Positions 3,001 to 51,813 of a stretch of DNA of 64,000 bases are shown here, in pieces. Origin of the DNA: Bugula neritina (taxonomy: Eukaryota > Animalia > Bryozoa); the NCBI GenBank assembly GCA_964035545.1, contig OZ037765.1, positions 20,212,995 through 20,276,994 of the forward strand, read 5' to 3'. The position numbers and the translations under genes were made by a program. The number at the start of each line of letters is the position of its first letter. Positions within the stretch are counted from its first letter, which is position 1. Under the pieces are notes generated by a model, which searched no databases, was not told where the DNA came from, and was given only the letters and a program-made list of their open reading frames with translations.

Positions 3001-6000
3001 ATGTAATACAGAGCAGTCAAGCATTAAGGTATTACATTAGTTGTTGAGACATTTTCCACCAAAACCCTGGAGTCATGTTGTCACTAGTCAGGATATCAGA
3101 AGATGTTATTACTGTCTACAGCTCAAACTAAGCGTTCAATGCAACTGTTAAACTGTACATTCATCACGACGCCTGTCAAATTATGGCTGCCCTTTATACC
3201 AGAGCAGCCAACGCTCCGCTGTAAGTAAATTTCTTTGGTTGCCGTCTGAGAGCTGATTGGCTGAGTTGTTCCAAATGTTTGACCTACTGCCATGTGACAT
3301 TAGCACTTGATTTATTAAATTCATTCAATGTGAATAGCATTTTATATATTATGTTTGTAAATTTGGGTAAACTAAGTTGTTATTGCAGACATGGCTGGGA
3401 GGGGAGATTTATTCTGCATTCTCATTGGTGAGGAAATGAGATTCTTGCTTGCAACTAGTTAGTATAACTACGCATTAAAATCTTGCAGTATGGGGAGGCA
3501 AGTGACCATAACATAACACAAGCACAGTTCAAAAATTGCAAAGAAGTCTTATTCTGAGCTGTAGAAGGGCCGATACATGGTTCAAAGTGGTGGAGTAGGC
3601 TGCATTATGCTCTCATGTATTTCATATACCTGGAAGTATAATAAAATCTACCGCATACAGAATATAATATAATCAGATTGGGAACAAGCTGAATACATCC
3701 ATGGGCCACCATAATGAACCAAGGGCTGATGGGTACAATAATGTCTACTATATGTTGATGAGGAACAAATTGTGCACCGAGTATAACACATCAATTACAG
3801 TGTAGCAGTTTATGAGCTATAAACATACTCTCTGTCTCTTGGTTGATGGTGCAGTCATATCATCATCAGCCTCAAACTCCGCTCTCGATCTTTTAGTTTT
3901 GTTAGCCTCAGCTTCACTGCTCTGTCCAGCATCCGGTACGGAACCAACACCACTCGTCCCAGCAGCATCAATACCTGTGACAAAGGATCAATATCTGTGA
4001 TATAGGATCAATATGCAATATTATAAACAAGTGCAATAGCTATCATTGTATAGTGTTTAGTACATGTCGTATGACTTGAAATAGAGCAAGAGAACTACAG
4101 ATATAAAACCAAGTAGATTTTTTACCTTTCAACGTGTATAAATTTTTTCATATTCTTTTTTAGTGTTGTTGTTATATTCTTAGAGTTATATCATACTTTT
4201 AGTTTTTTTTTACTGTGTTCCCTCCATATCTGATGATTCCACATCTCACGGAATTCCGTAGGCCATGAGAATGGCTTAAACCATTGTTTTGTGGCTTATG
4301 CATGTGTGTATAGGAACAAAATGGCCGAATTTAACAGATCAGTGAGTTAATTCTGGTATTCTACTGTCAATAATTGAGGTTTTTGAATCCGCAGCTTAAT
4401 GAAATATGGAGAGAGCACTGTATCATATTTTTAGTTTCTTTTATATTATATTTCAAGTGTTTTCGTATTTAATTACAAATAAAGCAAGTAGGGTTTATAC
4501 TTACTTGTGCTGCTCGAGGCAACTAATCCAACGACAGAGTTGCTGCCGAACATACTTGTATTGTCAGCAGGAACATGAGACGTTATGATAGTGGCGGGGG
4601 CAGCCTGAGGAGCTACGTTGAGGGAAACAACGGGAGAGGCAGTCTGCTGGGGCACCGTAGAATGCAATGAGAATATAACGGAGCTGCTAGAGGAAGAGGC
4701 AGCCCCAGACGGCAGCGTAACAGAAGTACCAGACGTGGAAGTGCTAGAGGGCAGACTAGACAGCTGCTGGACAGGGGGCACTTCGGCTGACGCGCTGTTA
4801 GATGACGCAACGTTGGTATTAGGAGAGGCGGCCACTGAAGTAGGAGAGACAATTCCAACAACTACCTCTGCAAAAACATTAATATTTGTGTAATTAATAT
4901 CAAAAGTAATAAATATTCTAATTGTTATAAAAAAGCAGAAAGAAGAAATAATCAAGTTGTATGCCATTCATACTGTGATAATTACTAGTTAGTTTGATAT
5001 GATGAGCTCTAAAATCTATTTTAAAGGTTCTCAAGAAATACCTTCGACATTAGCTTCCTGTGACTCAGCTTGACTAGTTGTGGGCATGACTGTAGCCGTG
5101 GGTTGCTTAGGCTGCTGTTGAGCCATGGGCCGTACCTCTATAGTCCGCACTTGGGAGCGCTTAGAATCCGTGCTAATAAGACATGCACCAATTGTTATAA
5201 ATACCATAGAGGAAGATAGTATATCGAAAATGTTATTAACCTTTCAATCGACAAAGTTAATTCAAGTTTAAAAATGATTGTGGGCTCAAAACTACGATAG
5301 GCTTCTGGGTAAAAGTTTCATGCAGTTTTTCAGTTATTTTTGTGATCAAAAAAGCTAAAAAAGTGAAATAAATTTTAATTTTTTTTTTTGTAAAGCATTA
5401 GGGATTTGTATCACTTATACCCTTATTATACTAGACGAACCACAAAGCGCAACTTATATCCCGACACTACAGCTGTATGTATAGGAGCCAGGTGACACCT
5501 ACCTAGCTGTAATATGACCAGACTGGTTGCTAGACTGAGAGCTTGCACTCTTTTCTTCTAAACTGAGCAGCTTAGCCCGAGATTCATCAAGGTTCTGCTG
5601 GGCTTCTTCTAACTGGCTCTCTACAATTAACAGCTTGATGATGAAAAAAACATAATATTTTAATCAATATACATATTTAAAAAACACTGACCATTGAAAA
5701 GCGTTATAAATCAAAGGTGCTAACATTTAAAGAAAATCTAACACAAATTTGCACCAAACAATATTGAATTTTGATATATTGACAAAATATTGTGACACTT
5801 TACCTAGTTCAGCTGCTTTATTTTTTAGTTGCTTATTTTCTTCACTTCTCTTTTCCATATCTTTCTTCTGGGCTGCTAATTTAGGCTTGAGACTCACATT
5901 AACAAAATCTTTCAGAGCAGTGTGCTTCGAATTCAACTCATCAAACTCAGCTTTCACCTTATTATACTTCTCAGTAAGTTCAGACAACTCCTACAGTAAT

Positions 6001-12000: not shown

Positions 12001-15000
12001 AAAATTTAGCACAATTTTGACTGTATTATCTGAATCTACTCATTAAACTACCATATAAATGTTATTTAATTATTCAATAAGAACATTTTAAAAATGAGAT
12101 TTTAAAAATCTCTTGTTGGCCTCTTAAAGCTATTAAATTACTAAATGTGGATGCTGGAGAAATGAGGAAAGTATCTTTACCTGTCGGTGATGTTTTTGTT
12201 CATCAATAGCTTTTAGCAGTTTTTCCTGACTGCTGGCCAACTGTTGATTGAGAGACTCCACCTTCTCCTTCCAACTTGTAACTTCTGCAGCCTGGTGGCT
12301 CTCCACAGTTTTCATGTCTTCCTTCAGTGAGACTATTTGCTTCTCCAGAGCTTGGTTATCATTCAGGGACTGCTCTAGTCTATGCTGGTAATGAGCCTTC
12401 ATTTCCACATTAGAGCTTTCAATACTCGTCTACCAAACAAGACTTATCTATTAACAGTCAGTTCTTAACATTGCATCAAATAATATACAGGCTTTCAATG
12501 CAATAAATAAGAGAAGGAAGAAAGCCATCTAAAAATCTTATCAGACCTTTAGGCAATAAACCGCATCATCAACATAAGTTAGTAACTGTAGAAACCTTGT
12601 TAGCATAACTGGCCACACAAATAGTGAAGAAAAACATGAAAAATTGTAACTCAAACAAAAATATTGAAAAAAAGATGTTAATTAAGCAAATAGAATACAG
12701 CTAGAATACAAGCCATAAGCAAGGGAGGCAGCAATAAAAGATGCTACATATCCAATACCTGTATACTCTGCAGGTTTGACAGCATTTGCAGCTGTAAATT
12801 ATAATCCTTCTTTGCTGTATCCGCCTCAACCTGCAGTCTTCTGTTGACAGCTTTCAACATCTCCACCTCATTCTTAGCCTGCTGATTGGCTACATCAAAC
12901 TTCACGGATGACTCTTGAGCACGGGAAAGATCTGCCCGTAGATTTTCGACTAGGGATTCATTCTACAACAGCAGTCATAATCAATGAAAAAGTAGGACAA
13001 TACTTATTATAATATATAGATCAATCACAATATATCCTAATAATATATGTAGATAAAACTGGCAAAGTTATACTATTCATGTATCAAACCAATTTAAATA
13101 GTCAGCGTAACACCAAAAACACTGAGAGAGTCCGGAGCAACCGACAGCCATTAAGAAGATATTCAGAATCCAGTAAAAATCAACTGTTTTAAAATGAATG
13201 TTCACAGCATAAAGAATAGACGATGAGATGGAGAGAAAGCACTATTTCTTGTTACCTTTGCTACAAGATTTGAATACTGCTCAGCCTTGGTTCTCAATGC
13301 ACTGATCTCTTGCTTGTACGCCACCACATTTTTCTCAATAACCTTTGAGCTCTCCATTGAATAGTCCAGCTGCGTAGTAAGCTTAGCATTGTTGAGTTTA
13401 ATTTCTGTCCTCTCTTTCTTTACTTCTTCCAACTCATTGCTTAGTTTCCTGTAGTCACAATATTGAGACCATAACAATTCACAAGAGTAAGATTAGGTTT
13501 ATACTAGCTAACAGCCCATTAAAGAATTTCCATTTAAAAACCAACATTTACTAAAAAATTATAGTATGCAGTCAAAACTCTGTCCCGAAAAAAGCTTTCA
13601 AAATAGAAAACTCCGACAAAGGGCTAAAAGGGTATGTATATAGTACACACCTCTCTTCATCTCTCTGCTCTTTCTTGTATGCTTGAAACTCCCTGTTGAC
13701 CTTTTCCAGAGATTCTTTAGAAGCTTTCAGCTCTTCCTTTAGTGACCTTAACTTCTCACTGTCTACTTCAGTGGTGGATCTAAGTGGGGAAGCTCTGGCT
13801 TGAGCCTACGCAAAGCATATATGAATATAAGACATAGCAAATAATCTATATTGCATAAATATAAACGAAAACATGATTTAACATCATATAACTTCAAGGA
13901 ACCATTATGAGTCACCTGATTACATTGACCCGTAAATAATAATAAAAAACAGCTCTACAAGTCAAAATAAGCTTTATGCTAAAGTTGTTGAGCATCAGAA
14001 TAACGATGGCCATCAAAGTGTGGCACTCTTATATTTACATAGTATAGAAGTATGTCTATTATATATCCAATTCAGTTTGATAGCTTTAGTCTCAGCTATA
14101 ACTATTTCAACAACTAAGACATGTTATTATAGTATTCAGAGCAGAGTAATGCGCACAAGGAGCTCTACTGTGTACAATTCTAGACATCAAGTGTACCTCT
14201 TTAACATCTCCCTGTTCTACCAGTCTCTTGTACATATCCCGCTGTTTGATGATGGATTGTACAAGCTCTTCCTGTTTGAGACGAGATTGCTTCAGGAACC
14301 CAACTTCCTGCCGAGTGTTTGCCAGCTCCATCTCTAGCGCTTTAGACTTTTCGCTTCCCTCACCCGACTTATCGCTGGCTTCTTGAGCCTCAGACAAACT
14401 CCTCAGTGCCAGCCGTAACTGCTGGTTCTGTTTCTGCAGCTCTTGTATGTCTCTATAGGAATTCAATTTCAACAGTATGACCAATTTATAACAGAATGGT
14501 GAATGAACTATATACAATACTATTAATAGTCTAGTATAGACCATGGTGGTGAGATGACAAGGTAGCAAGGTGCTACTTGCTTGTGCAGACAATATGTCAC
14601 ATGATGATGTTATGAATGTGCAAGCACCTGCAGAGCATGTCATGGTCTGCACACCACTACTTACTTGAAAGATACAAGTTGATTTGAGATCACGTCTGCA
14701 GCAGTACTTTGTGAGCTGGAAGAGCTGGATACTTGAGTTGAGATGTCTTCATCTACGACACGCCCACCTTTAGCTATATGTATTTCTTTAGTGAGCACTT
14801 GAACCTGCGGCACATTACAAGTATATAATATATTCAAACATAAACCTTAGGTGGTGTAGGTATATGAACATGTGTGACACTGTCAACTTTGTAACTGTAT
14901 ACATCTAGACAGAGGGAAATGTGGATATTCTCCAAAGGGAAGTGAAAAGCAAATGAGCAAGACAATTTAATACATAAAAATTTTTACAACTTTTTAAAAA

Positions 15001-23985: not shown

Positions 23986-26600
23986 ATGAATTTAGCAGTG
24001 TGTACTTTGGTGTTGTGTTTGACAGTTATCAGTTGCTTTGGTGCAACTATTAATGAAGCTTTAGTTAATAAAGATGTACAAAGAAAGGTAGACCTGACAT
24101 CTGCATTGGTTAAGGTATCAACCGATATCACTGTTGAGAACACCGGTAAATCGTCTCTCTCATCTTATGTTTTCTCATTAGATAGCAATGTTGCGAATAA
24201 TGTTGCTAGCGTTGTTGCTACGGTAAAATCTAAAGGAGTCGTGGAACAATTGAGTGTCAAACCAGTATCTGGAGATCAAAAATCGGGATTGTTTTATGAA
24301 ATTTCATTTAAACAACCTCTTGCAGCCGGAAAGTCAACAAGCATCAAAGTTGTTACTTCCTTGTCTCATGTATTGGAACCGTTTCCTGCTGAAATTCGTC
24401 AAGCTGAAAGGCAACTTGTTAGATATGTTGGCAACCTCTACTTTTATTCGCCATACACAACAATTTCGCAAAAAACCATCGTTTCCTTAGCATCTGCAAC
24501 CGTTGAATCTTACACCAAGACAAAGCCTGTTTCGAAATCAGATTCTACCATAACGTATGGCCCTTATGAAAACAGACCAGCTTTTGATGTTGCTGATTTG
24601 CAAGTGCACTATGAAAATAATACCCCATTTTTGGCTGTAACAACGATGACCAGGGCAATTGAAGTAAGTCATTGGGGAAATATTGCAGTAGAAGAAACTT
24701 ATGATGTTCGCCACACCGGTGCAAAGTTGAAAGGTCCTTTTTCTCGATATGATTACCAACGCCAAATCGCTCATAGCTCAATTAAATCGTTCAAAACTGT
24801 TCTTCCAGCATCAGCTGCTGATGTTTATTATCGGGATGAAATTGGAAATATTTCAACCAGTAACATGCGAGAAATGGACGATGCAGTTGAGTTAGAACTT
24901 CGTCCAAGGTTTCCATTGTTCGGAGGTTGGAAAACACATTATGTCGTAGGATATAATGTCCCAAGTTACCAGTACTTATGGACTGATGGTGGTAATGGAT
25001 TCTCACTGAAGATGCCATTTGTTGACCATGTTTTTGATAATCAAATAGTTGATGAAATTATTGTGAAAATTATTCTTCCCGAAGGTTCAGATGTAAGTAG
25101 TAACATGCTATAGCAGAATTACATTTATTTGACAGGATTGTATATGTTTTGCAATTGAGTATGATTTATTAGAGTAATTACATTATACCTATGCTTCACC
25201 TAAATTTACTTTTAGGTGACTGATTTGCAAGTTCCTTTTGATTTCCGAAGAGGCAGTGATGAGCTTCAATACACTTATCTTGACACTATTGGCCGTCCAG
25301 TTATTGTTCTTTCCAAAAGTAATTTAGTTGATGTCCATATTCAGGATTTTAAGCTGAGGTTAGTGTGTTATACTGAAGTCAGTACTGGACTAGCAGTTAT
25401 ATAATCATGGTTCATTAGTATAATTACTTGAATTCTTAATTTTTTTTCCAGCTACACATTCAACAAGATGACTCTGCTTCGAGAACCAATGATGGTTGTT
25501 GGATTCTTCTATTTGATTTTTGTCTTTGTTATTGTGTACGTTCGCCTCGACTTCTCTATTTCACGTGATGAAGCTGCAGAGTCTAAGTTGAAAGTGGCCA
25601 GTTACATAGAAAGTGCTCAGAGTGTCCTTGATCGCCGTTCTGCCCTCTATCAGGCTTATGATGATGCTGTCAACAAGTACAAGGTAAGAGGAAATATATA
25701 TATATATATATATATATATTCAAACTTTGCAATAATGTTTTTAAGACTCCTAAACCACTCTTTCTCTTCACTCTCGTGTTGTAGGCAAGCAAGGATATCT
25801 CTGCCTACCAGACTCAGCGAAAGAAGGTTGATGCTGATCACAAAGAACTAACTGCGCAAGTAACTACATTGCAAGCTCAATTAAAAGCGGAGAATGCGGA
25901 TGCTGCTGTTGAGAAATTGGCGGAAATTCAGGTACCTGGTGGTTAACACCTAAATGTAGTAGTAATTTTGCTACTTCAGTTATTATTATTTGCTGTCACC
26001 TTAAGAGTAGTCTAAATAAAAGTTAGCAGAGTCATGACAACTTTGTCTCTTAAAACTTATAATATATAGTGCATTGAAAATGACAAAACTCACTTGTAAT
26101 CAAAGTACTGTTGATGTTTTCAGCCTTAATTTAACTGGTAATCTTTTTTACTTGTCACCTCAAAAAAATTGCATTTTGTCAAGTGAGATTTAGTGTTTTG
26201 GAGCTGAGCACTCGTTGGCATTAGCATCCATTCAGAAGGTTAACCCTATTTAGTGTGAGTGTAAGAATATCCAGTAAAACTAGTTTTGGTGCTACTCTAA
26301 ATGCAGAAGACTTCAGTATTTTTATTTAAAACCAGTGTTTTATTATTACTAATGTATTTGCAGCATGTACAAATAATGCCACAAATACCTTTATTCGTTC
26401 AATTGGTATGTTAATGTATTTATACTATACAGAAGCTAGATGGGGTGTATAAAGAAAGTGTAGCAGCAAGTTCCGGACAAGCTGAGAAGTTAGTTGCAGG
26501 AAAAGTTACCCGGGATGTCTACCTGAAGCAAGAAGAACAAGCCGCCAACAAACGTACCGAATGTCTGAATAAAATGGAAGCACTTGCTAGTCAGCTGTAA
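23986..26600 (+). CDS. RPN1: Ribophorin I (oligosaccharyltransferase subunit 1); exons 23986-25092, 25216-25358, 25452-25683, 25785-25931, 26433-26600
   Basis: Signal peptide; motifs IEVSHWGNIAVEE, GPFSRYDYQR, VYYRDEIGNISTS, LRPRFPLFGGWKT, YTYLDTIGRP and the TM segment LLREPMMVVGFFYLIFVFVIVYVRLDFSI. All introns are GT-AG with compatible phases. TAA at 26598-26600. Confidence 0.97.
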
Positions 26601-32900: not shown

Positions 32901-35900
32901 TGCTATAGGTGTATAACTAAATATTTATTATATAAGTATGCTGCACTATAAAGCACTAACTGCAGTGCATAGTTGATATACATTACAATCTATAACATAT
33001 TTCAGCCTGGTGTGTTATGAACCATGAAACTCTTTAAATTTTCAAAGTAATCTTAAATTTGACAACAAAATGGAGCAGTCCAGGATGTTTGTTTGTTTGT
33101 TTGTTTGTTTGTTTGTTTGTTTGTTTGTTTGTTTGGTTTATTTCATCAAAGGTATTTAATAACACAAGGACATTAGAAAATGCCAAGGAGGCGATGATGA
33201 GGCCCATTGCGCTATAGCCTAGCTAGTCATGCGCGGGCCAACACGAGCTGACAGCGACTCTATCCAGAAAAATACAAAAAAAATACAACTATTCTAACAG
33301 ATAAAGCCTCAACTTCCTCCCAAATTCATTAGGGTTGCTAATTGACCGTAAAGGGATTGGCAGTTCATTCCATAGTGCCACCTCCTGATAACAGTTTCTC
33401 CTGTGACCTGCTGCTGTTTGAGAGTGAGGAAGGGGGAGATTTATGAATGATTGACGTGTATTGATAGAGTGAGTGGGAAAAAAATTGTCAGAGTAGAAAA
33501 AAGAATGAGCTTTCTTTAACACTTTAAAACGGTAAATCTGGTATATTGAGAGAACTTTATGCTTAGTAAATAGAGGCGCTGATGGATGGTCAAACGGTTT
33601 TTTGTTCATGATACGCATTACCTTTTTTTGAAAAATAAAAATCTTGTTTAGATGGGTATTAGCTGCATTTCCCCAGGCCTCTGCACAATAATTTAACTTG
33701 GAATTGATGAAAGAATTATATATCAAAAGTAAAATTTTTTGAGGGAGATATTCAGAACATCGGTATATTAATCCACTAAGTGGTCGTAATTTTGTAAGTA
33801 GGTTTGAGATGTGCAAGCTCCAATTTAAATTTTTATCTATTTGTACACCTAGAAAAGTTATGCTGTTAGAGTAATTTATAGGTCTTTTATTTAATAATAT
33901 ACAGTTTTCTAGAATTTGAAAAGGATTTTGGTAGTTTTTTAAAACAATATAGTTGCATTTTTCATAGTTTATAGTGAGTTTGTTTTTATTGCACCAAATT
34001 GACAGAGAGTTTAGATCTTGATTTATAGCTTCCAAATGGGAGTTCAAATCTTTTGATTCAAAAAATAAATTAGTGTCGTCGGCATAGAAAATGGGATTAA
34101 AAAGTTTAAATTGTTGAGCAAGATCGTTTATATATATCAAAAATAAGGTAGGGCCCAAGACAGATCCCTGGGGAACCCCACAGGTCACTGATCGTGAACT
34201 TGATAAGGTTGCATTTACTAGTGTGGAATGACTTCGGTTTGATAGGTAGTTAGCAACCCATGACACTGTGGATTCACTAAAACCAAGTTTTCTCATTTTT
34301 GCAAGTAAAATATTGTGATTTATAGTGTCAAAAGCCTTACTAAAATCTATAAAAATTCCGAGAACGCAATTTCCATTGTTAAAAGCTTCGAGCGTATTAT
34401 TTTTAAATTTAACAACAGCATCTGCAGTACTTAAATTTTTTCGAAAGCCATATTGATTCTTAGAAATCAAATTTTTAGATTCTAAAAAGTTTAAAATTTG
34501 ATTGTTAACAATTTTTTCAAGTATTTTACTAAAAATGGGGAGGATTGAAATAGGGCGGTAGTTTTCACATCTGTCATGAGAACCTTTTTTGTAGAATGGT
34601 AATATTTTAGCAGTTTTAATTTGCGCTGGAACAATTTTTTCTTCTATGCTTTTGTTAAATAAATAGGCAAGTGGTGTAGATAGTGAAATTTTGCAAAATT
34701 TGATAAGTTTAGTCGGGATATTGTCTAAACCTATAGCTTTCTTGGAATCTAGTTTTTCAATGATCTCAATTATTTGAGATTCATCAGTTTTTTTTAAATG
34801 AAATTCTTCTTTAGTAATATTTGTCAGCATTGAGTAGGTATCGGAGTTCGAATTTGTAAAATTTGAAGCTAGTTTTTGGGCTATTGTTGAAAAATACAGA
34901 TTGAAATTGTTAGCTATATCCATATTGCTATCTAGCATGGTTTCAGAGTCCTCAACCGAATACAGTTTTGATGAAAAGCATCTTTTGTTTAGTTTGGCTT
35001 TCCCTGTTTGTTCATTTATAAGTACCCAAAGCTGCGAACTGTTACAATTGCTAATAAAAGCTTTAAAATAATCATATTTAGCGGTTCTCAGATCAGCATT
35101 CAAATTATTTCTAAAAGCATTATATCTTTTTAAAATCTTTTTATTCAGGGGTGCTTTTTTCACTCGTTTGTGAAGTGCATATTTCTTTTTGATTTGAGTT
35201 AAAAGATGTTCAGTAATCCATGGTTTTTGTGCAAACTTTTTAGAAGGCCTATTGTTTTCAATAGTCTGTGAACAACTTTCAATGAGAAATTTTAGTCTAG
35301 TAATAAATATATCATAGTTTACTTCACAATTTTGTGAGTCATCAAAGAGCTTCAACCAGCAAAATGAGTTTATCTTGGAAACTAGTTTGGAATAATTAAT
35401 AGTTCTATACATATCATCTGAGACAATATTAGTTCTATTTGAACAATTCAGTTGAAACGTCACAAAAGTGGGTAGGTGGTCACTCAAATCTGACTCAATG
35501 GTTCCAGATTTACCGTTTATGCAAGAGAAGTTTAGAAGGATATGATCTAAACAGCTAGCTCGTGACGATGAGATTCTAGTTGGGAGAGTGATAGCATTGT
35601 AAAAGGCATAGGTAGAAATAGTGGTGGAATAAGTGTCACTTACATTCATGTCAAGGGTATCTATATTGATGTCACCTACTACAATATGGGGAGAAGAATC
35701 ATGGGAAATATAAGCCTCCAGGTCACTAAGAAACGCATCAGTGGAGGAAGCACCGGGCTGCCTGTATATAATTGTGAGTCTGAAATGGGAAGACTTTGAG
35801 GCCTGACTGTGTAGAACAAGTGAGAGGACGTCTGCTCCAGACAGCGAAACAGCCTTCGTGTCGGCCCCCAGGCCACACCGCACATAGGCCCCAACACCAC

Positions 35901-38900
35901 CTCCTCTACCCAGTCTCTGACTACCTACAAAATCATAACCTTCAAGTTTAAAAAATTGAATTTCATCATCATTTAGCCAAGTTTCAGTTAAACAAATTAC
36001 ATCAAAGGGGTTAGAAAAAGTGTTCAAAAAATATTCAAAATGTGAAAATTTATTTCTAATGCTTTGAATATTAAAGTTAAGAAGAGAGAAAGTTGAATTA
36101 TTTACTTCTAGTTTGTTAAAAGAAAAGATGTCGTATGCTGTGCAGTTAATTTCATGCATTTTGCAAAAGATAACTTAGCAGTTTAAGTTAAATACAAAAG
36201 TGAGGTACACTAAACACATTTCAGGTTCTCGAGATCATTTACATCATTTATTTGGATAGCCTCCGAGTCAGGTGTTCTGCGCAAGTAAATTCGTTGGGCA
36301 AATGTCCAAACATACTTATAGTTGTTTGATTTTTTGAAGTTTCTGGTTTTCCAAAAAAGGTCCCTTTGCTTACTACTGAGAATTATTATCTTAATAATCA
36401 TATGTACTCAGACCTATAGTAGAGAGAGAGATGCTTTCTAACTGTTAAATGAAGCTATTTTCTAGTTACTGTGTAGTAAGGGATGATTGCTACATTTCAC
36501 GAGATACCAAAAAGCCCTCAAGACAAGTGTTTAGCACACATGGCCATGCTACTCAATAAGCACAGTTTCTAACATATGTCTCATGTATATGTATTCCAAT
36601 ACAACCTGAGCACTAACTACTCTGAACACTAACTGGTGTGACTTACAAGTAAATGCAATGATTGAAAGCATAGCACAGGTACTGACTGCATACCTGCTCC
36701 TGGAAGGTAGACAACTCCTGCTCCAACTCTTCACACTTGATAGACAGCTGTTTGTTTTGCTCTAGTAAAGTTTGGCCAATGCGAGCAGCTAATTCCAGAT
36801 CTTTCTCTTTCTAATCAATACATAAATTATAGTACAAAGTAATGGCAAAGCAAACATGGCCCTCGCAGCCTCAATGTCAGGGAGAGCCTGCTCCTGTGTA
36901 GTTATAATATGCCGAGAAGATGTCACTAAAGGCAAGGCAAGAGGTGATTTCAATGCTTTAACTGACCATGTTTAGGCAGAAAAATTACATATTTAACTTA
37001 TTAATACCATCACAATTACTCATACTGCTGTGAAATCAATCAAATTGAGGGTAAGCTAACTATAAACTTACCATCAACAAATAATAAAACAATGCAATAC
37101 TCTTCCCATTACATTACATCCAAACTCAACTAATCATTAATATAGAAAAGCCCAATACAAAAGAGTTGAAAACTTCAACAATAAATAGACAGACCTCTTC
37201 TAAGAGATGAGTCACAGCCTCGATATCATCATAGACTTTCGTCATTTGACTAACTCGTTCTCCACAAATCACTGCAGAATATATTAAATTATTATGACAT
37301 GATGTGACCAGCCAGAGCAGCTAACTGAACAAAGCAGTGAACAAGCTGAACGTGAAACAATAGTAGTACTAGTAGTAAAAGGAACTAAATGAAACAATTG
37401 GTTAACCCATGGCTGTGTTCATATATAAAATTAGATGAGGGTTTTACACTTTTACCTCAACACCAATCTAGCAGTTATATGCTATATATCAGTGACCTTA
37501 GCCAAATGTTGACACTGGAACTCTATTGACAATTCTATTATAATAAAGTTATCAATAGCTAATAAAACAACAAAAAGCTGTTTAATAGCAGTGTTATAAC
37601 AGTAGCTGTGCAATCAACTCCTTTACTCAGTTAAGGAGAACAAACAATGATTGCATGTTAGCTCAGTGTTATTGTTCATCTAAGTTCAACAGCAAAGATA
37701 TATAAACAAGTTAGAAAATAATTCTAAAAGCAAACCAGCTGCCGCTGATTATTAACAAGTGAATGTATATTATTATATAGTCACACAGCAATACTGTACC
37801 ATTTTTGAACAGGGCTGCTGCACTAGCTGCTGCATCCATCTACATCTAAGTAACACCAAAGCATGCAATCAATCAAACTGAATACAGCCAACAGCTATTA
37901 AAGTGTGTGAATGAGCAATAGTTGGGAAAACTGGCATCCTCAGTGAATAGTTAAATGCCACAGCGGGCCAAGTTCATAAAGTGCAGCGTTCAGGAAAATA
38001 AAGGTGATGTTTTACTACATGTATACAAACTAACTAGCTAAATAATACTGCATATGAACCACATCTTAGTTTCAACTTACAGAAATATTTAAAAACTTCC
38101 GAAATTTGTTCTAAAGATAGCTGTAGATCTTGAGCTTGTATAAGGGGAGGTTGTGGGACACCCCAGTCTTGAGTGTGATAGGATGAGAAGTCTGTGATAG
38201 TATTTGCTCTCAGCTTGTAACTTGGTAATGACTCAGTAAGTATAGACACCAGCTCTATTTCCGGCAGTTGATCGCTAGTGCACACGTCTGCAAATAGCAC
38301 TAATCCTACTAATCTTACAGACTATGGACTAGGAGTATATGCTGCATTAGCTTTCTGGGTTATCAAATAGCAAAACCATTAGCAACCTGCAAACTCCAAA
38401 GTAAAACCACAACACTGCTGCAATTAACTAATAAAATTACCCAATAGCTCATAGCAAAAGATGCTAAAAGCTGGAAAAAACATTAAAATCAATTATGGCA
38501 GCAAAAAATTATGGACCTAAAGAAATTGCTTTGTAAACTTCTAGCTTTAAAAGGAATTTGTAATTGACAGATATATTTTTTAAAGGTGATGTTTGTATAC
38601 AATAAAAAACTCGCTAAACCCAATATGTACAGAAACTTTTATCACAGAAGGTTCAATATTTCAGAAGTATGCCTCTGATTTTTTTTTTGTTTCTTTATAA
38701 ATATAGAGATTAAACCCAAACTTTGAGTGAATTGGAGGTTTTCTTGTACTATTTTTCAAAGAGACCACGATAAGTTACCAGGTTTTATAGGTGTAAACTA
38801 TAATCCAACTAGAGTTTTATAAGTACACATGATTGAATAAAAGGGTAAAAGCTAACCTGTCAACGTGCTAGCATCTTGCACTTCTACCATTAAGCAGCAT

Positions 38901-43970: not shown

Positions 43971-44928
43971 GTATAATTTAAATTTCTTGCATTAGGTATC
44001 ATTTTTCTTATTTTAGGACAATCAATTTTTATAATTTATTGTCTTAAAATAGAAGTAAATTTCAACACTCATTGTATTATATTGGAGTTGTTCCCTGGCA
44101 CTTGCAACTTTATATGCCAACTCAATACTAATTATTATTATTAGTTATTATGCTTCCATATAATCAACACTTTGACATTTGTGAAATCAATTGCATATGT
44201 ATGAGCATGTTTTCACACCCTAATTAACTATAATAATTATTGGCATTTTATAATGAATGAAGCATACATATATATGTTATGGGAAAGCTCAATACTGAAC
44301 ACTGTTGAGCAAACTTATAATATCTCAATATGATCCTTATTATTTTATGTAATAACAACTAATTTTTATTGTAGGTCTGAGAATTTAGTTGCTATTTTTT
44401 GATATTTTATAATGTAAATAAGCATTTTGTTACCTTTGCTATAATTTTGCTATGCTTGTGAACTTAATTGAAATGCAACCCATTTGTTATTTTATAACCA
44501 TGTAACATTTTTACACTTTCGCTGTGATTATTGGCACTTTTTAAAAATAAAATACTATTATATAAAAGCTTTTACCAAATTTATTTTATTTGATTGGCAA
44601 ACAGAACAGATTACAACAAAATAAGCATATTTGAAAAAAAAACTGCTCAAGTGATATTATAAATAACAAGTGTTCAAAGCTCAAATACTAATTTCATAAT
44701 TTATAGCTGTACTTTCTCTGTATACTCTATAGTCTGTAAGACAATTGTATAAGAATCTAGATTGTCTTCTCCTGAATACTAGACATTATGGCTGTATAGA
44801 TTACAGTATATCAATGATATTCACTTCACTACCAACATTCATCACTGTCTTGGCTGTCAGCATGCACTACATCTACATACACTGTGTTGATCTTGTCTTA
44901 CTTGGAGTTGTCATACCAATTACTTTTT

Positions 44929-45608
44929 TCATACAGCCTCTGTTCTTATAATTTGAGTAGGCTTTCTAGCAGTCTGTAATTATAACATACAACTCATTAC
45001 CAGATAATACTAAAAAGTGTAACACAACAAGTTATCAAGTTCTCAAACTATCGAAGTGTTATTTAAAAGAATCATGGTTGTTTTACAAGTAATAAACATA
45101 CATTTAATTTTGCCTTTGCACCAACTCCATTAATACTTTTATAAATCTGTATAGCTATCTTTCTTCTTTCAATAATTCATTGTAAATATATAATTACGAA
45201 ACATGATTTTAAACTATAATAAGTTGTTTACCTGTGTCAATATAACTGTCATCAACTTGGTGAGCTGTGACTTTGATATGATTGAGTTATTGTATAATTT
45301 CTGTATGACATTCAACTCCTGCTCCATCTCTATTCTTTCTTCCTGTTGTAAATTACCAAAGCGTTTCATGAGTTTTGATATTAAATTGTAGTTGTAGAAT
45401 CAGTATTATTTATAATTCAAACTATAGTGAAATATTTACTTCTCAAAATAAAAATTCAAATCTATTAAAGTAATATTTAGACATGACGTGAAGATAAACA
45501 CAACATTTTACTCACTGCTGACTTATTCTGTAAAACTCTCTTAATCCACATTCTCTCTCCTTTACCAAACACAGTAAATGAGTACACAGTAGTTGAAGTG
45601 ATAGACAT
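44929..45608 (-). CDS. Uncharacterised 82-aa protein, copy A; exons 45516-45608, 45232-45342, 44929-44973
   Basis: Spliced translation MSITSTTVYSFTVFGKGERMWIKRVLQNKSA/EERIEMEQELNVIQKLYNNSIISKSQLTKLMTVILTQ/TARKPTQIIRTEAV*. Phase-0 GT-AG introns, AATAAA near 44590, and the structure is conserved in paralog B. Confidence 0.8.
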
Positions 45609-47696
45609 GATGAGTGATAATATTAGTTCAGTAAATCTCTGCTCAATAAACTCTCTTGGCTGATGCAAATCAAGTTTGTGACTTTGTGTTGTCGGAGTTA
45701 TGTTTTTGATTGTTGAGTGTAATGAAGTTAGCAATGCATTAAAATTTGAATTTTAAATACTGAATATATGAAATAATATATTCATGTTCTAGATATTATT
45801 TTGTTATGTTTATACTGAAAATTTATCATGGTGAACGAATTAAGTCAATTATGTACATTGTAACAATGATTGGAGCTAATAAAAGTACGGTGATAAATAA
45901 TTTAATTAAAACCTTCTATGCATGTACGTACTGTTTTATTTCTCATGCTTTAAATTTAAACGTTTACAATTATTGAAATCAAACAGGTTTTGCAGGCTGC
46001 ATGTTCCACAGATATGTTAATATATTATTTCTTTTAATTTGTAAAACTTTTTATAATTTAGCATGATAAAGTTTTTTCTTGCTATGTCTTTGAAGCAATG
46101 TATTTTTTAAGCTGCCTCTGATAAAAAAATTAATCTATGAGAGTAAATTCTGTCTGTTCATATTATATACAACAATTTTATATATAATGCCAATTTATAG
46201 AACTAAATAATTAAACAAAGTATAATAAACTGTGCCAAATTTTAGTGAATGAATGCACTGACATAGCTTGATCACCAGAAAAATATGTATTAATATTATT
46301 TAGCACTCAAAACTTTTAGATGAAATTCACAGTACAGCACTATACGTGCACTGCATTCATGCTGATTGATAATTGTTTTTCATAAATCTGGTGTGTAAAA
46401 TGCATCAGACCACCTGATACTATTCATCATAATGTAGATACAACCATTGACAGATTTGCCTAATCTGCAACATGAACAAAAATCTAACATCATTTTCTTC
46501 GTCTCACATGTATCATGAAAACACTGCATCACTTGTAAATATTTATAATTCATTGTTGGAGCTCTTATTAAAATGGAGTTTTAATAGCTAGCTATACATT
46601 CTCAATATGATCTCTAACACATATAAATTCAGCCTGTATGTATGTGTTCTCTTAAATCTGCCTTTTTAACTCATTCAACTAATTTTTTTCTTTTTCTCAA
46701 GTTACAGTAAGTTATTTAATTTATAATAATTAAATATGTCTGAATTAAATTAGAACTACATAATCATCTCAAATTGTCATAACAATAGTTGATACTTGTA
46801 ATATAATATAATGTCTAAGCTGGCAGATCAGTTTGTTAAATCTGTATTAGAATGATAAAAATAAATCAGAAACTAATGTATATGATTACAATATTTAATA
46901 AACGTGTGTGGTGCATAATTTAATTAGATTGTCTAATGTGCTATTATATGCAAAATGCAGCCTACTTTCCTACTTTAGCAATGTCATTGCTTTACACAGT
47001 TTATAAGTTATATCTGCAAGATAATAATCCAAGAGTATATACCATTAAGCATAAAGCCAACAACATATACGTATAATCAGTAACATAATATAAGATCTTT
47101 AAGCACAATAGCCTCAATGCTTTAGACATGTGTCTTTGTTTAAACAAAAATAAAATGCTAGTGTTTCATTTACAAGTAGTAAGCTGAAAAAAAAGCGACA
47201 TTCATTTTATAAAGAATAAATTATACCCCAAATACAATTCCTGCTTTTACTTGTTGAGCTGCATGCTTGTATCAAAGATGATCTATACCTGAACTTTAAC
47301 CCTTTGGCTTGTATTGTAGCGTGTTATGTAGTGATTAGTTATAATATTTGTATTTGTTATCAACTCACTAAATTAAGTTTCTTGCTTGGCTTGATTGCCA
47401 TGTTAGCTCCAGCTCCTTTTTTAATAAGCTGTAGTGTGTGTAGGTAGGCCGATATATGTCAAACATTTGGTTACTTGTCTGTAAAGTTGTTCATAACCCT
47501 GTTACCTCATGAACACTCACCCTAGTCTCTGATGCATTATAATGCAATGCACTCTCACTCTACACGATTCTTTTAGACAACCTCTATGCAATAATTATAT
47601 TGTATATACGAATCAAACTATACACAACCATCCAAACCACACTATAAATTAGGCTCCATATTACTGTCAATTCACTTTTAGTTATGCTTTCCTTCT

Positions 47697-47697
47697 C

Positions 47698-47743
<46 letters not shown>
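47697..47743. repeat. Poly-C/(CT)n microsatellite
   Basis: A C run followed by about 17 CT units. Confidence 0.95.
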
Positions 47744-47747
<4 letters not shown>

Positions 47748-48800
47748 AAGAGCTGTGAGCTGTAACACTACAGATTATATATCAATTAAAAGTTATAATA
47801 TATAACAATTTCTGATGCTGGATTTAGTTTTGTCAATATTTTAATTAACTTGGATTTTGTAATTCTGGCTTGGACATTACATTTGAACATATATATTCGT
47901 TAGCCATATTTTAAATTATAATGCAAGTTTTCTCTATCACCAGTTATGCAAACATGTTTTGCCAATATATGCTTATTTATGACAGTACTGTGCTTCAACT
48001 TCATGTTTTAGTCATTAACATAATTAGCCTATATTAACCACTCTTTTGTTTCTATAGTAAGCCAAGTTTAACTTTTTTAATTACAATCTGAAAGATAACT
48101 TATAAATAAAAATATCACACTCCCTTTTCAAAAATCATAACAAAAATGCCATTTAAGGTGCAGTAGTGGTGAACTTTCTATAGCTTGAGTTTTTTGTTTT
48201 CTCATTAAGTTTTGGTTTTGTACATGAATTGAAGTTGTTGAAAAAAAGCATAATTTATTATGATAAATTTTTAATCTAAAACGCAGGCTTTTCTCAAAGT
48301 TCTCCATAATACTGCATTGTACCTGAAAAATGCAGTATAACAATCTACCTTACAGCAATAAAGATAATTAGGCTGCAGTGCAGTAAATAATTTGCTAGAA
48401 TAGATGGTGAAGCTGAAAATATTTTCATTTATGCACGTGTTAAAAATATTGGCAAAATTTTAATAACCTGAACTAAAGTATAAAATCAGATCAAGAATGT
48501 TAACTCAATTACCTTTTCGTTAAAAAAATTAGAAATACGAAGCTAGTTACATACACATATGGATCAGCCTGGAGAATATCTAAAAAAAAATAATATTATA
48601 CAGAAATTCAAAAAATACCAAATTCAATTACCCTAATGAGCAACAAAAATATTTTAAATACAAATTTTAATACAATGCTAACTTCATTACACTCAACAAT
48701 CAAAAACATAACTCCGGCAACACAAAGTCACAAACTTGATTTGCATCAGCCAAGAGAGTTTATTGAGCAGAGATTTACTGAACTAATATTATCACTCATC

Positions 48801-49458
48801 ATGTCTATCACTTCAACTAATGTGTACTCATTCACTGTGTTTGGTAAAGGAGAGAGAATGTGGATTAAAAGAGTTTTACAGAATAAGTCTGCAGTGAGTA
48901 AAATGTTGTGTTTATCACTACGTCATGACTAAATAAGACTATATATTATTTGATTTGACAATTTTCACTTTTGAATTTTCTACTAGTTTAAACTATAACG
49001 TGTGACTTGATATTAGAAAACTCATAAAATATTCTGATAATTTACAACAGGAAGAAAGAATAGAGATGGAGCAGGAGTTGAATGTCATACAGAAATTATA
49101 CAATGACTCAATCATATCAAAGTTACAGCTCACCAAGTTGATGGCAGTTATATTAACTCAGGTAACCAGCTAACTATAGGTTGAAAATGTTTTTTCTGTA
49201 ATTATATGAGTGATGCACATATTGTATTGTTGAAAGAAGTTAGTTATGCAGATTTATAAAACTAAAAGTAACTAGAGTTAATACAAAGGCAAAATTCAAT
49301 GTTTGCCTATTACTTGTTAAAACAACCACGGTTTCTTTTAAATAACACTAAAAATTTGAGAAAATTTTGTCTTACCATATTATCTGACAACGGGTTGTAT
49401 GTTATAATTACAGACTGTAAGAAAGCCTACTCATATTGTTAGAACAGAGGCTGTATGA
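48801..49458 (+). CDS. Uncharacterised 82-aa protein, copy B; exons 48801-48893, 49051-49161, 49414-49458
   Basis: Spliced translation MSITSTNVYSFTVFGKGERMWIKRVLQNKSA/EERIEMEQELNVIQKLYNDSIISKLQLTKLMAVILTQ/TVRKPTHIVRTEAV*. Donors GTGAGT and GTAACC, CAG acceptors, AATAAA at 49761. Confidence 0.8.
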
Positions 49459-50869
49459 AAGTGTTTGGTATGATAACTCCAAGTAAGAAGAGATCAACAC
49501 AGTGTAAATGTAGTACATGCTGACAGCAAACATAGTATTGATGTGGAGAGTAAAGTGAATATCATTGATATACTGTGATCTAGTTGATATTCAGGAGAAG
49601 ACAATTTCAGTTTCTATATAACTGTGTTAAGAGTATAACTATAACATGGAGAATGTGCAAGCTAGTCATGACATTAGTATTAAGCTGTGAACTACTATAG
49701 TGTCAAATATCAGTTTTTAGACATGTTTATTTTGTTGTAATCTGTTCTTTTTGCCAATTGAATAAAATATACTTGGTAAATGTTCTGCTATATACATGCA
49801 TATTCAATTGATACAATGTGCCAATAATCATAGCAAAAGTGGAAAAAAGTATTCACATAGTTGTTATATAGCAATTTGATAATATTATGTCTAATATATT
49901 AACTAGCAACAAACAATGTTCATTTATTATAAAACATTATAAAATATAGCAGCTGAGTTCTTAAACATAAAGGGAATGATTAGCTACATGAAATAAGAAT
50001 ACTATAATGAGAAATTAAATAAGTTCGTTTAATAGAGTTAATTATTGAGCTCTCCTAAGACATGTATTTTTCTTAGCTTGTCCTAAAATACCAATTATTC
50101 TAGTAATACAACTGGTTTCACACATACGAAAGGGTTCATTTTATGGCATCAAAAAAATAACAATTAAATTAGTATCCAGTTGATATAATGTATATGTATA
50201 TTAAACCATTTGCAGGCTATATTTTGTAGCCTTGGGTAAAACTGGTACAGTTTGTGAGTTAAATTTTGGGTACAAAATTACAAAAACTTTAAACATGTCT
50301 TTCAAACTTTGAACCTGAACTAAAATGGTTGAAATATTAATATCATAATTTTTCAACTGTATTAATAACTTCACCATAAAGTGCACCCACGCTGATGCAG
50401 ATATCTATGAATAGGTTTAAAAATTAAAAGCTGAACAATACATGGTGACACCATGCTGGAGTAGCACCACTAACTAATGTGTATTTGCACACAAAGGCAT
50501 AATATTATTGTAATACCAATATTCATTTTATAAAGACATCATTAGATAACTATTATTATGTATTTTCGGTGGTAAATAGCATCAGCTCGTATTAAGACCC
50601 ATCCTTACGCAGCTTGGTAGGTGCTATACAACAATGTTGGTCATAGCATGCTTCTTCTTTATTGCATTGTTGTTGTACAATGTTGATCCACTGAGATGGT
50701 CAAGAAAACTAACTCTGTAGGATTTTTCTTAAAAGTTCCTAGTATGACCTGAGAATTAATTTTGATTTTATAGTGTTCACAAAATAAATTCGATGGAGTA
50801 TTGTATTATTTTATTTAGAACACTGAAAATGGGATGGGTATTCTGATTCAGTGATATAGCTATAATCAT

Positions 50870-51219: not shown

Positions 51220-51795
51220 GTCACTCTAAAATTCACTCTGAGTCTGATAGTGATACTCATACTGATAGTGATAGTGATACTCATACCGGCTTAAAGTTTA
51301 ATAGAACTAGAAGTAGTACTAGTTGAATGCAACCTCAAATTGAAATTAAATTAGATTAACTTTTACTTTTAGTGTCTTTAACCATAATGAGTTAACATGA
51401 TTTATTTGCTATAGTATCTGTATTGGCTATTGCATTTGCAACTCACCAACTTTAACTTTATCATTGACATTATGATTATGATTATCAATATGAATAAGGA
51501 TTCAATTCAATAATTATTATGAACTGTAGCTAATACTAATAGCATTACTATTACTATTAGTATTAGTAATACTACTGCTAGTAGTAGTGATTACTGATAG
51601 TGGGTCAAATTAGTATTACTATAACTATTACTATTAGTATTAGTATTACTACTGTATTACTATTAGTATTAGTCTATTACTATTACTATTAGTAATAGAC
51701 TAATACCTATACTTATGCTATTGCTATAACTATTAGTACAAGTATTACCATTAGTAATAGTATCTATATTACTATTAATTTTTTATTTACTTATA
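51220..51795. repeat. Degenerate hexamer-periodic tract (ACTATT/AGTATT/AGTGAT) in the MKI67 first intron
   Basis: Periodic runs at 51220-51285 and 51460-51795. Confidence 0.8.
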
Positions 51796-51813
51796 GTTAG
51801 TATTAATGAACCT

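Follow-up and report, generated by a model that had tools for sequence, protein, structure and literature searches.

An inverted gene pair in the bryozoan Bugula neritina likely belongs to a lineage-restricted family of small helical proteins

Introduction

Two inverted arms of about 1.2 kb, separated by a spacer of about 2.9 kb, raise a simple question: are they a pair of genes, the ends of a mobile element, or the remains of a decaying repeat? The arms are located in a window of 64,000 nucleotides (nt) (i.e., the whole stretch of DNA that we analyzed), which corresponds to C1:20212995-20276994 of a Bugula neritina assembly of 216.0 Mb in 321 contigs. The published Darwin Tree of Life assembly of this bryozoan is 216.00 Mb in size and has 9 chromosomes (PMC11480708). 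A preliminary description of the window proposed that each arm contains a three-exon gene for a helical microprotein of 82 amino acids (aa). Here, we examined this proposal with whole-genome searches, substitution counts, and structure predictions. The results suggested that each arm is likely to be a complete transcription unit of a multigene family that is restricted to this lineage.

Results

Gene models of the window copies

The two arms (44505-45759 and 48650-49850) aligned as a series of collinear inverted matches. The best inverted segments were 307 nt at 93% identity and 170 nt at 90% identity, and the right arm was 79% identical to the left arm over 1201 nt. The homology extended from about 150 nt upstream of the ATG to about 100 nt beyond the AATAAA; farther upstream, nothing was alignable. 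The proposed three-exon coding model was confirmed in both arms by a base-by-base check: the exons were 93, 111, and 45 nt long, all of the introns ran from GT to AG, all of the junctions were in phase 0, and each copy had an AATAAA. Introns 1 and 2 were 157 and 252 nt long in the right copy and 173 and 258 nt long in the left copy. The coding sequences of the copies differed at 7 residues, with no insertions or deletions (indels), and the silent changes consisted of 5 purely silent codons and 2 silent sites within replaced codons. The coordinates are listed in Table 1.

When the window copies were compared segment by segment, the divergence was 3.3% in the 150 nt upstream of the coding region, 4.3% in exon 1, 29% in intron 1, 4.5% in exon 2, 21% in intron 2, 11% in exon 3, and 23% in the 3' untranslated region (UTR).

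A family of about 25 loci

Whole-genome DNA searches and exon-wise protein searches revealed at least 25 loci that carry both exon 1 and exon 2; the order and strand of the exons were the same throughout, and the distance between them was about 150-215 nt. Fourteen of these loci were on chromosome 1 (17.5-25.9 Mb), one was on chromosome 4, six were on chromosome 7 (8.06-8.15 Mb), and four were on chromosome 3 (6.27-6.69 Mb); homologues of exon 1 were found at 24 genomic places. A tree of 23 copies contained two well-supported clades, clade A (chromosomes 1 and 4) and clade B (chromosomes 7 and 3), which shared about 45-55% residue identity. Thus, what had been described as a hidden pair was part of a much larger set. 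Moreover, the two window copies were not each other's closest relatives; the left copy grouped (with modest support) with copies at 19.965 and 20.070 Mb. It seems probable that local and segmental duplication gave rise to the family.

In the chromosome 7 array (L035, C7:8126500-8136499, at about 3075-5921 on the minus strand), inspection by eye indicated that family members alternate with signal-peptide-bearing, cupin/JmjC-like exons, which suggested that the duplicated unit there is about 5.5 kb and contains two genes. An older B. neritina draft (GCA_010799875.2) was only about 85-87% identical to this assembly at an orthologous locus, which is consistent with the known B. neritina sibling-species complex. 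A family copy on draft contig VXIV02002865.1 (L039) had no counterpart at the orthologous C1:19108326-19114570 of this assembly, suggesting that copies turn over between sibling species. The same draft contig carried a repeat of about 300 nt that resembled a short interspersed nuclear element (L039:5013-5307); 40 of its 1754 candidate places in the present assembly were scored in a first look, and the matches had 80-83% identity.

Are the arms the ends of a foldback transposon?

The genome-wide distribution of the copies also bore on a possibility that the preliminary description had raised against its own proposal, namely that the arms are terminal inverted repeats of a multicopy foldback transposon. 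Two inverted arms of about 1.2 kb around a 2.9-kb spacer have the layout of such an element, and another head-to-head pair was present on chromosome 1 at 20.068/20.070 Mb. However, the copies beyond the window pair were mostly solitary or tandem rather than inverted pairs, and the spacer was single copy in the genome, except for one dispersed repeat of about 170 nt at about 48150-48330. The outer flank was likewise unique, except for a repeat of about 250 nt at about 51530-51800, and no terminal repeats or transposase were associated with the family copies. Many arm-spacer-arm copies with near-identical termini, which would characterize a foldback element, were not found. Furthermore, the arms were 79% identical overall, but the identity rose to 95-97% in the exons and the promoter, as is typical of genes rather than of transposon ends, and the two arms were not sister sequences. 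We consider the foldback reading to be effectively refuted already, and its probability to be negligible.

Transcription of the two genes from a shared spacer, which the preliminary description had inferred, was not supported either: a separate conserved upstream block of 150 nt accompanies each copy, and the spacer itself was unconserved. As for the two repeats noted above, 40 of the 537 candidate places of the 170-nt spacer repeat were scored in a first look. The 250-nt flank repeat had 2183 candidate places, 40 of which were scored, yielding 207 matches; it often matched both strands at one place, which suggested that it is palindromic or tandem.

Selection on the exons

We counted substitutions among paralogues by the Nei-Gojobori method. 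Specifically, we used exon 2 in full and the final 75 nt of exon 1, counted each exon separately, and summed the counts. The ratio of non-synonymous to synonymous divergence (dN/dS) was 0.18 for the window pair, 0.33 for the close chromosome 1 group, 0.25 for chromosome 7 versus chromosome 3, and 0.15 for the close group versus two outlying clade A copies. Across all of the comparisons, dN/dS ranged from 0.10 to 0.33 in the frame of the gene models and from 1.0 to 3.7 in the two shifted frames. In nine phylogenetically independent paralogue pairs, 57 changes were synonymous and 81 were non-synonymous, and 20% synonymous changes were expected; the ratio of non-synonymous to synonymous changes per site (pN/pS) was 0.35 (binomial P = 5e-9, or 1e-5 when the most diverged pair was left out).

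The splice sites were also retained. The AG and GT boundaries of exon 2 were intact in 21 copies, and the acceptor of exon 3 and its starting residues, TV(R/K), were kept in clades A and B. In addition, identical residues in the two clades were encoded by different codons. Thus, the family displayed both frame-specific purifying selection and conserved splice sites, as expected for protein-coding sequence, and the proposal that the exons are under selection was supported. The coding constraint on the family is real but moderate.

A conserved core and a variable tail

The conserved part of the protein consisted of exons 1 and 2, about 64-68 aa. Exon 1 contained the motif F-[TS]-[VM]-F-x-K-G-[ED]-x-M-W-x-K-R-V (alignment A4), and in exon 2 residues Q8, E9, L10, I22, K24, Q26, L35, and T36 were invariant (alignment A1). 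Hydrophobic residues in exon 2 were spaced 3-4 residues apart.

Structure predictions, family scans, and protein searches were all performed on single exon pieces. When the exon 2 piece was folded with alignment A2, a helix at residues 2-18, a turn, and a helix at residues 24-36 were predicted, and the mean predicted local distance difference test (pLDDT) score was 94.5. The exon 1 piece was predicted to have an unstructured start followed by a helix at residues 16-30 (pLDDT 71). Hence, the helical character that had been assigned to the protein was borne out for the separately folded pieces.

In contrast to this core, the tail ranged from 6 to about 60 aa across the family. Exon 3 was at least 35 aa both in clade B and in an outlying member of clade A (at 25.9 Mb); within the close group on chromosome 1, the homologous exon 3 DNA had its stops at differing points, producing tails of 6-14 aa. 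The C-terminal TEAV, which had been likened to a PDZ ligand, was present in the two window copies only; the other copies ended with other residues. Because the exon 3 homologues of clade A end at different stops, the TEAV end is accidental, and the conserved C-terminus of a class I PDZ ligand was not observed. The TQT triplet at the exon 2/3 junction, which had been compared to an LC8 anchor, was kept in nearly all of the Bugula copies. However, its TQ falls in the second predicted helix (the exon 2 model ends at the junction) and has hydrophobic flanks, and the triplet is missing from the relatives outside Bugula. A role in LC8 binding is unlikely, given the predicted helix and the missing triplet.

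Relatives of the family

No known family was recognized, in agreement with the preliminary description. Scans of Pfam-A with the exon pieces of both clades and with six outside relatives (P0008-P0013; see below), at expectation values (E) up to 10, yielded sub-threshold noise (DUF7770, E 0.13; DUF4047, E 0.012). PDB sequence profiles of both exons yielded noise and no related chain, and an ESM Atlas search by features returned no usable match. The resemblance to alpha-alpha hub folds (RST, HHD, TAFH; four or more helices) that the preliminary description had loosely suggested is conjectural, and the exon profiles matched no PDB chain of this or any other kind. Word searches with the stop-free frames around exons 1 and 2 recovered Bugula open reading frame (ORF) fragments at most, and a word search with a clade B exon 2 recovered no match.

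A profile of exon 2 was searched against 1.84 billion proteins at E <= 0.001 and had 11 matches: five Bugula ORF fragments and six others, P0008-P0013 (E 4e-9 to 5e-5). The six came from ENA metagenome assemblies (ERZ1740062/68/72 and ERZ23487463/535) and from Logan assemblies of SRR25569773/79/89. Judging from their sequences, P0008-P0013 are from other, eukaryotic contigs and not from Bugula, because they had no close match in this genome, their guanine-plus-cytosine content was higher, and contig L043, the one outside-relative contig that was compared by DNA with the B. neritina assembly, had no DNA match. The flanks of the outside relatives had no DNA or protein match in the Bugula genome and no match in Pfam. 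A scan of metagenome loci, from which near-identical Bugula records are excluded, yielded the outside relatives alone. The word and profile searches, which yielded Bugula fragments and a few metagenome and sequence read contigs, supported the proposed lineage restriction.

The gene structure around the hairpin varied among the outside relatives. P0010 retains the boundaries of the 37-aa exon 2. In P0013, the acceptor is unchanged and the donor falls one codon sooner, so that the exon encodes 36 aa. The copies in the ERZ assemblies are multicopy, single-exon ORFs that start directly at the hairpin and have no exon 1. In the outside organism, the hairpin gene adjoins a conserved, serine-rich ORF of 406-427 aa (L055:3357-4640 and L058:2607-3827, both on the minus strand), for which no Pfam match and no Bugula match were found.

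The sole named relative of exon 2 was the B. neritina hypothetical protein EB796_019370 (P0005, from draft GCA_010799875.2). This 68-aa protein includes exon 2 from a member of the family, with 85% identity over the exon 2 part, but its model begins at a Met within exon 2, has no exon 1, and is joined to an unrelated downstream piece. EB796_019370 is a chimeric gene model that does not describe the proposed gene. We also considered P0006 as an intronless processed copy and rejected this idea: its contig shows a genomic copy that has lost the intron 1 donor.

Conserved non-coding blocks

A block of about 50 nt, located 55-105 nt upstream of the ATG, was conserved between clades A and B despite saturated synonymous sites. 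It reads roughly CTCAACAAT, then CATAACYYCG, and then GACAYAAAGTCACAAACT. In the right copy, the block contains the family-wide core AAAGTCACAAACT and the motifs AACAAT and ACAAAG, which we take to be of the HMG-box (SOX/TCF) type. A TCAG just downstream of the block could be an initiator and the site of the transcription start. An open frame upstream of the ATG in clade A was considered as coding and rejected, because stops and indels interrupt it in clade B.

A second block is located at the start of intron 1. Among 19 copies, its first 14 nt, GTRAGTAAAATGTT, hardly varied, and the 20 nt that follow were similar. In the window, the two blocks are at 48700-48745 and 48894-48930; they were also sited in family loci L011-L033. 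An RNA structure that pairs the leader with the start of intron 1 was tried as an explanation and set aside, since the RNAalifold consensus from the leader to the intron start was weak (-5 kcal/mol) and included a single compensatory pair between the clades.

The intron block is relevant to an alternative reading of the exons, in which longer genes start with exons 1 and 2, or the actual product is a 39-43-aa peptide that continues from exon 1 into a retained intron 1. When the intron is read in frame from exon 1, 9-12 extra residues are followed by a stop, and this short extension and its stop are similar in both clades, with two third-position differences; moreover, the first 35 nt of the intron are conserved family-wide, and the P0005 model joins exon 2 to a distant exon. 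However, none of the three codon positions varies in the first 14 bases of the intron, and this is more in keeping with a nucleotide-level element than with coding sequence. Exon 2 itself is under coding constraint and has conserved splice sites, and exon 3 has a stop followed by an AATAAA, where the homology between the arms ends. We therefore consider longer genes or intron retention to be quite improbable, and continue with the three-exon gene models.

Other features of the window are listed at the end of Table 1.

Table 1. Positions of the two family copies, the spacer, and other features in the 64,000-nt window
Feature	Position	Strand	Basis or remark
Left copy, conserved upstream block	45609-45759	-	Arm matches, low divergence
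Left copy, exon 1	45516-45608	-	Model check by script
Left copy, intron 1 (173 nt)	45343-45515	-	Model check by script
Left copy, exon 2	45232-45342	-	Model check by script
Left copy, intron 2 (258 nt)	44974-45231	-	Model check by script
Left copy, exon 3 coding part with stop	44929-44973	-	Model check by script
Left copy, 3' UTR to AATAAA (44590-44585)	44585-44928	-	Read directly
Intergenic spacer between head-to-head copies (~2.9 kb)	45760-48649	.	No ORF of note (ORF list)
Right copy, conserved upstream block (putative proximal promoter and short 5' UTR)	48650-48800	+	3.3% divergence from left copy
Right copy, exon 1 (31 codons from ATG)	48801-48893	+	Translation, GTGAGT donor
Right copy, intron 1 (157 nt)	48894-49050	+	First 14-35 nt conserved family-wide; remainder diverged
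Right copy, exon 2 (37 codons; both ends in phase 0)	49051-49161	+	AG/GT boundaries kept in 21 copies
Right copy, intron 2 (252 nt)	49162-49413	+	GT..AG; 21% diverged from left copy, indels
Right copy, exon 3 coding part (14 codons and TGA)	49414-49458	+	Acceptor and first residues conserved family-wide
Right copy, 3' UTR to AATAAA (49761-49766)	49459-49766	+	Read directly
Non-long-terminal-repeat retrotransposon ORF, intact, 956 aa, Exo_endo_phos and RVT_1	33289-36159	-	Domain matches
Large exon of ribophorin I gene	23986-25113	+	Pfam E 4e-123
TPR-nucleoprotein-like piece	14107-14652	-	

Discussion

The explanation that best fits the data is that the copies are a real, unannotated, and lineage-restricted family of small helical proteins, and that the window pair represents two ordinary members. 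We think this is likely, and several findings weigh against it. Selection was only moderate (pN/pS 0.35). In the window pair, the synonymous divergence (0.15) was lower than the intron divergence (0.24-0.37), so gene conversion or nucleotide-level constraint may contribute to the similarity of the exons. At least three copies were broken: a TGA is present in exon 1 at 20.070 Mb, exon 2 has a frameshift at 18.905 Mb, and the end of exon 2 is altered at 18.914 Mb. The differing stops of exon 3 in clade A suggest that part of the family may be decaying. Finally, no spliced transcript or full-length family protein was present in the protein collections that were searched, in which coverage of Bugula RNA sequencing data is uncertain.

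Some of these findings are what would be expected if the copies were a decaying repeat or pseudogene family (for example, a gene fragment that was spread by duplication or by a mobile element) that has no functional product today. The family is multicopy, clade A tails are cut off at different places, and the public draft annotation offers just the chimeric 68-aa P0005. A decaying family would not, however, be expected to show a significant synonymous excess in one frame only, splice sites that are kept across clades with saturated synonymous sites, or an exon 2 that is conserved in other organisms. In addition, the flanks beyond the transcription unit were not shared among copies, and neither the unique spacer nor the lack of terminal repeats and transposase points to a mobile element. 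Decay of the whole family is unlikely in our view, and a family of working genes is the explanation that we prefer.

If this explanation is correct, each gene would most likely be transcribed and spliced to make a small, soluble protein of about 70-100 aa that has no signal peptide. The core of the protein, which comprises the C-terminal helix of exon 1 and the alpha-hairpin of exon 2, would probably form a small helical bundle, and the C-terminal tail would be free to vary or disappear. With low certainty, we infer that the core acts by protein-protein contact; in the simplest model, the amphipathic hairpins would pair, with themselves or with those of a paralogue, to form a four-helix bundle. 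Members of the family may be co-regulated via the 50-nt promoter-proximal block, with its two HMG-box-type motifs, and the element at the start of intron 1.

A more elaborate reading joins these points to the outside relatives. The exon 2 hairpin might be an undescribed module, QEL..(7-8)..I[ST]KxQL, of several (probably bryozoan) genomes that was expanded to about 25 genes in B. neritina. Expression of these genes might be governed by the promoter block with its paired HMG-box-type sites and by the intron 1 element, which, perhaps by pairing with the leader, might select either a spliced product (about 80 aa) or an intron-retained one (about 40 aa). As a whole, we regard this combination as a long shot.

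With these results, the gene catalogue of a phylum in which functional genomics is scarce gains about 25 genes that had not been annotated, together with a protein family that is new and has no name, and a chimeric public gene model is corrected. The family is also a clean case for the study of how young families of small proteins grow, shed their tails, and retain a core, and the sharply conserved promoter block and intron element are experimentally tractable handles. In itself, the family is an orphan like many others in this genome, and it has no bearing on a long-standing open question.

Three kinds of known systems are useful for comparison. The TQT-motif partners of LC8 share the conserved triplet with the Bugula copies, but the LC8 anchor is located in a disordered segment and binds as a beta-strand, whereas the Bugula TQ is predicted to be helical. 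Rop-like and other helical-hairpin dimerization modules share a two-helix hairpin with exon 2, which was predicted with confidence. They have no sequence relation to exon 2; the resemblance is in kind only, and dimerization of the Bugula proteins is conjectural. A third parallel is with the taxon-restricted (orphan) multigene families of small invertebrate proteins, which are similarly clustered and recently expanded, are under moderate purifying selection, and have copy turnover, variable tails, and no Pfam or PDB relative. The Bugula family differs from these orphan families in having a defined core of 64-68 aa that is kept across saturated clades, and its family-wide promoter block and intron element are an unusual detail.

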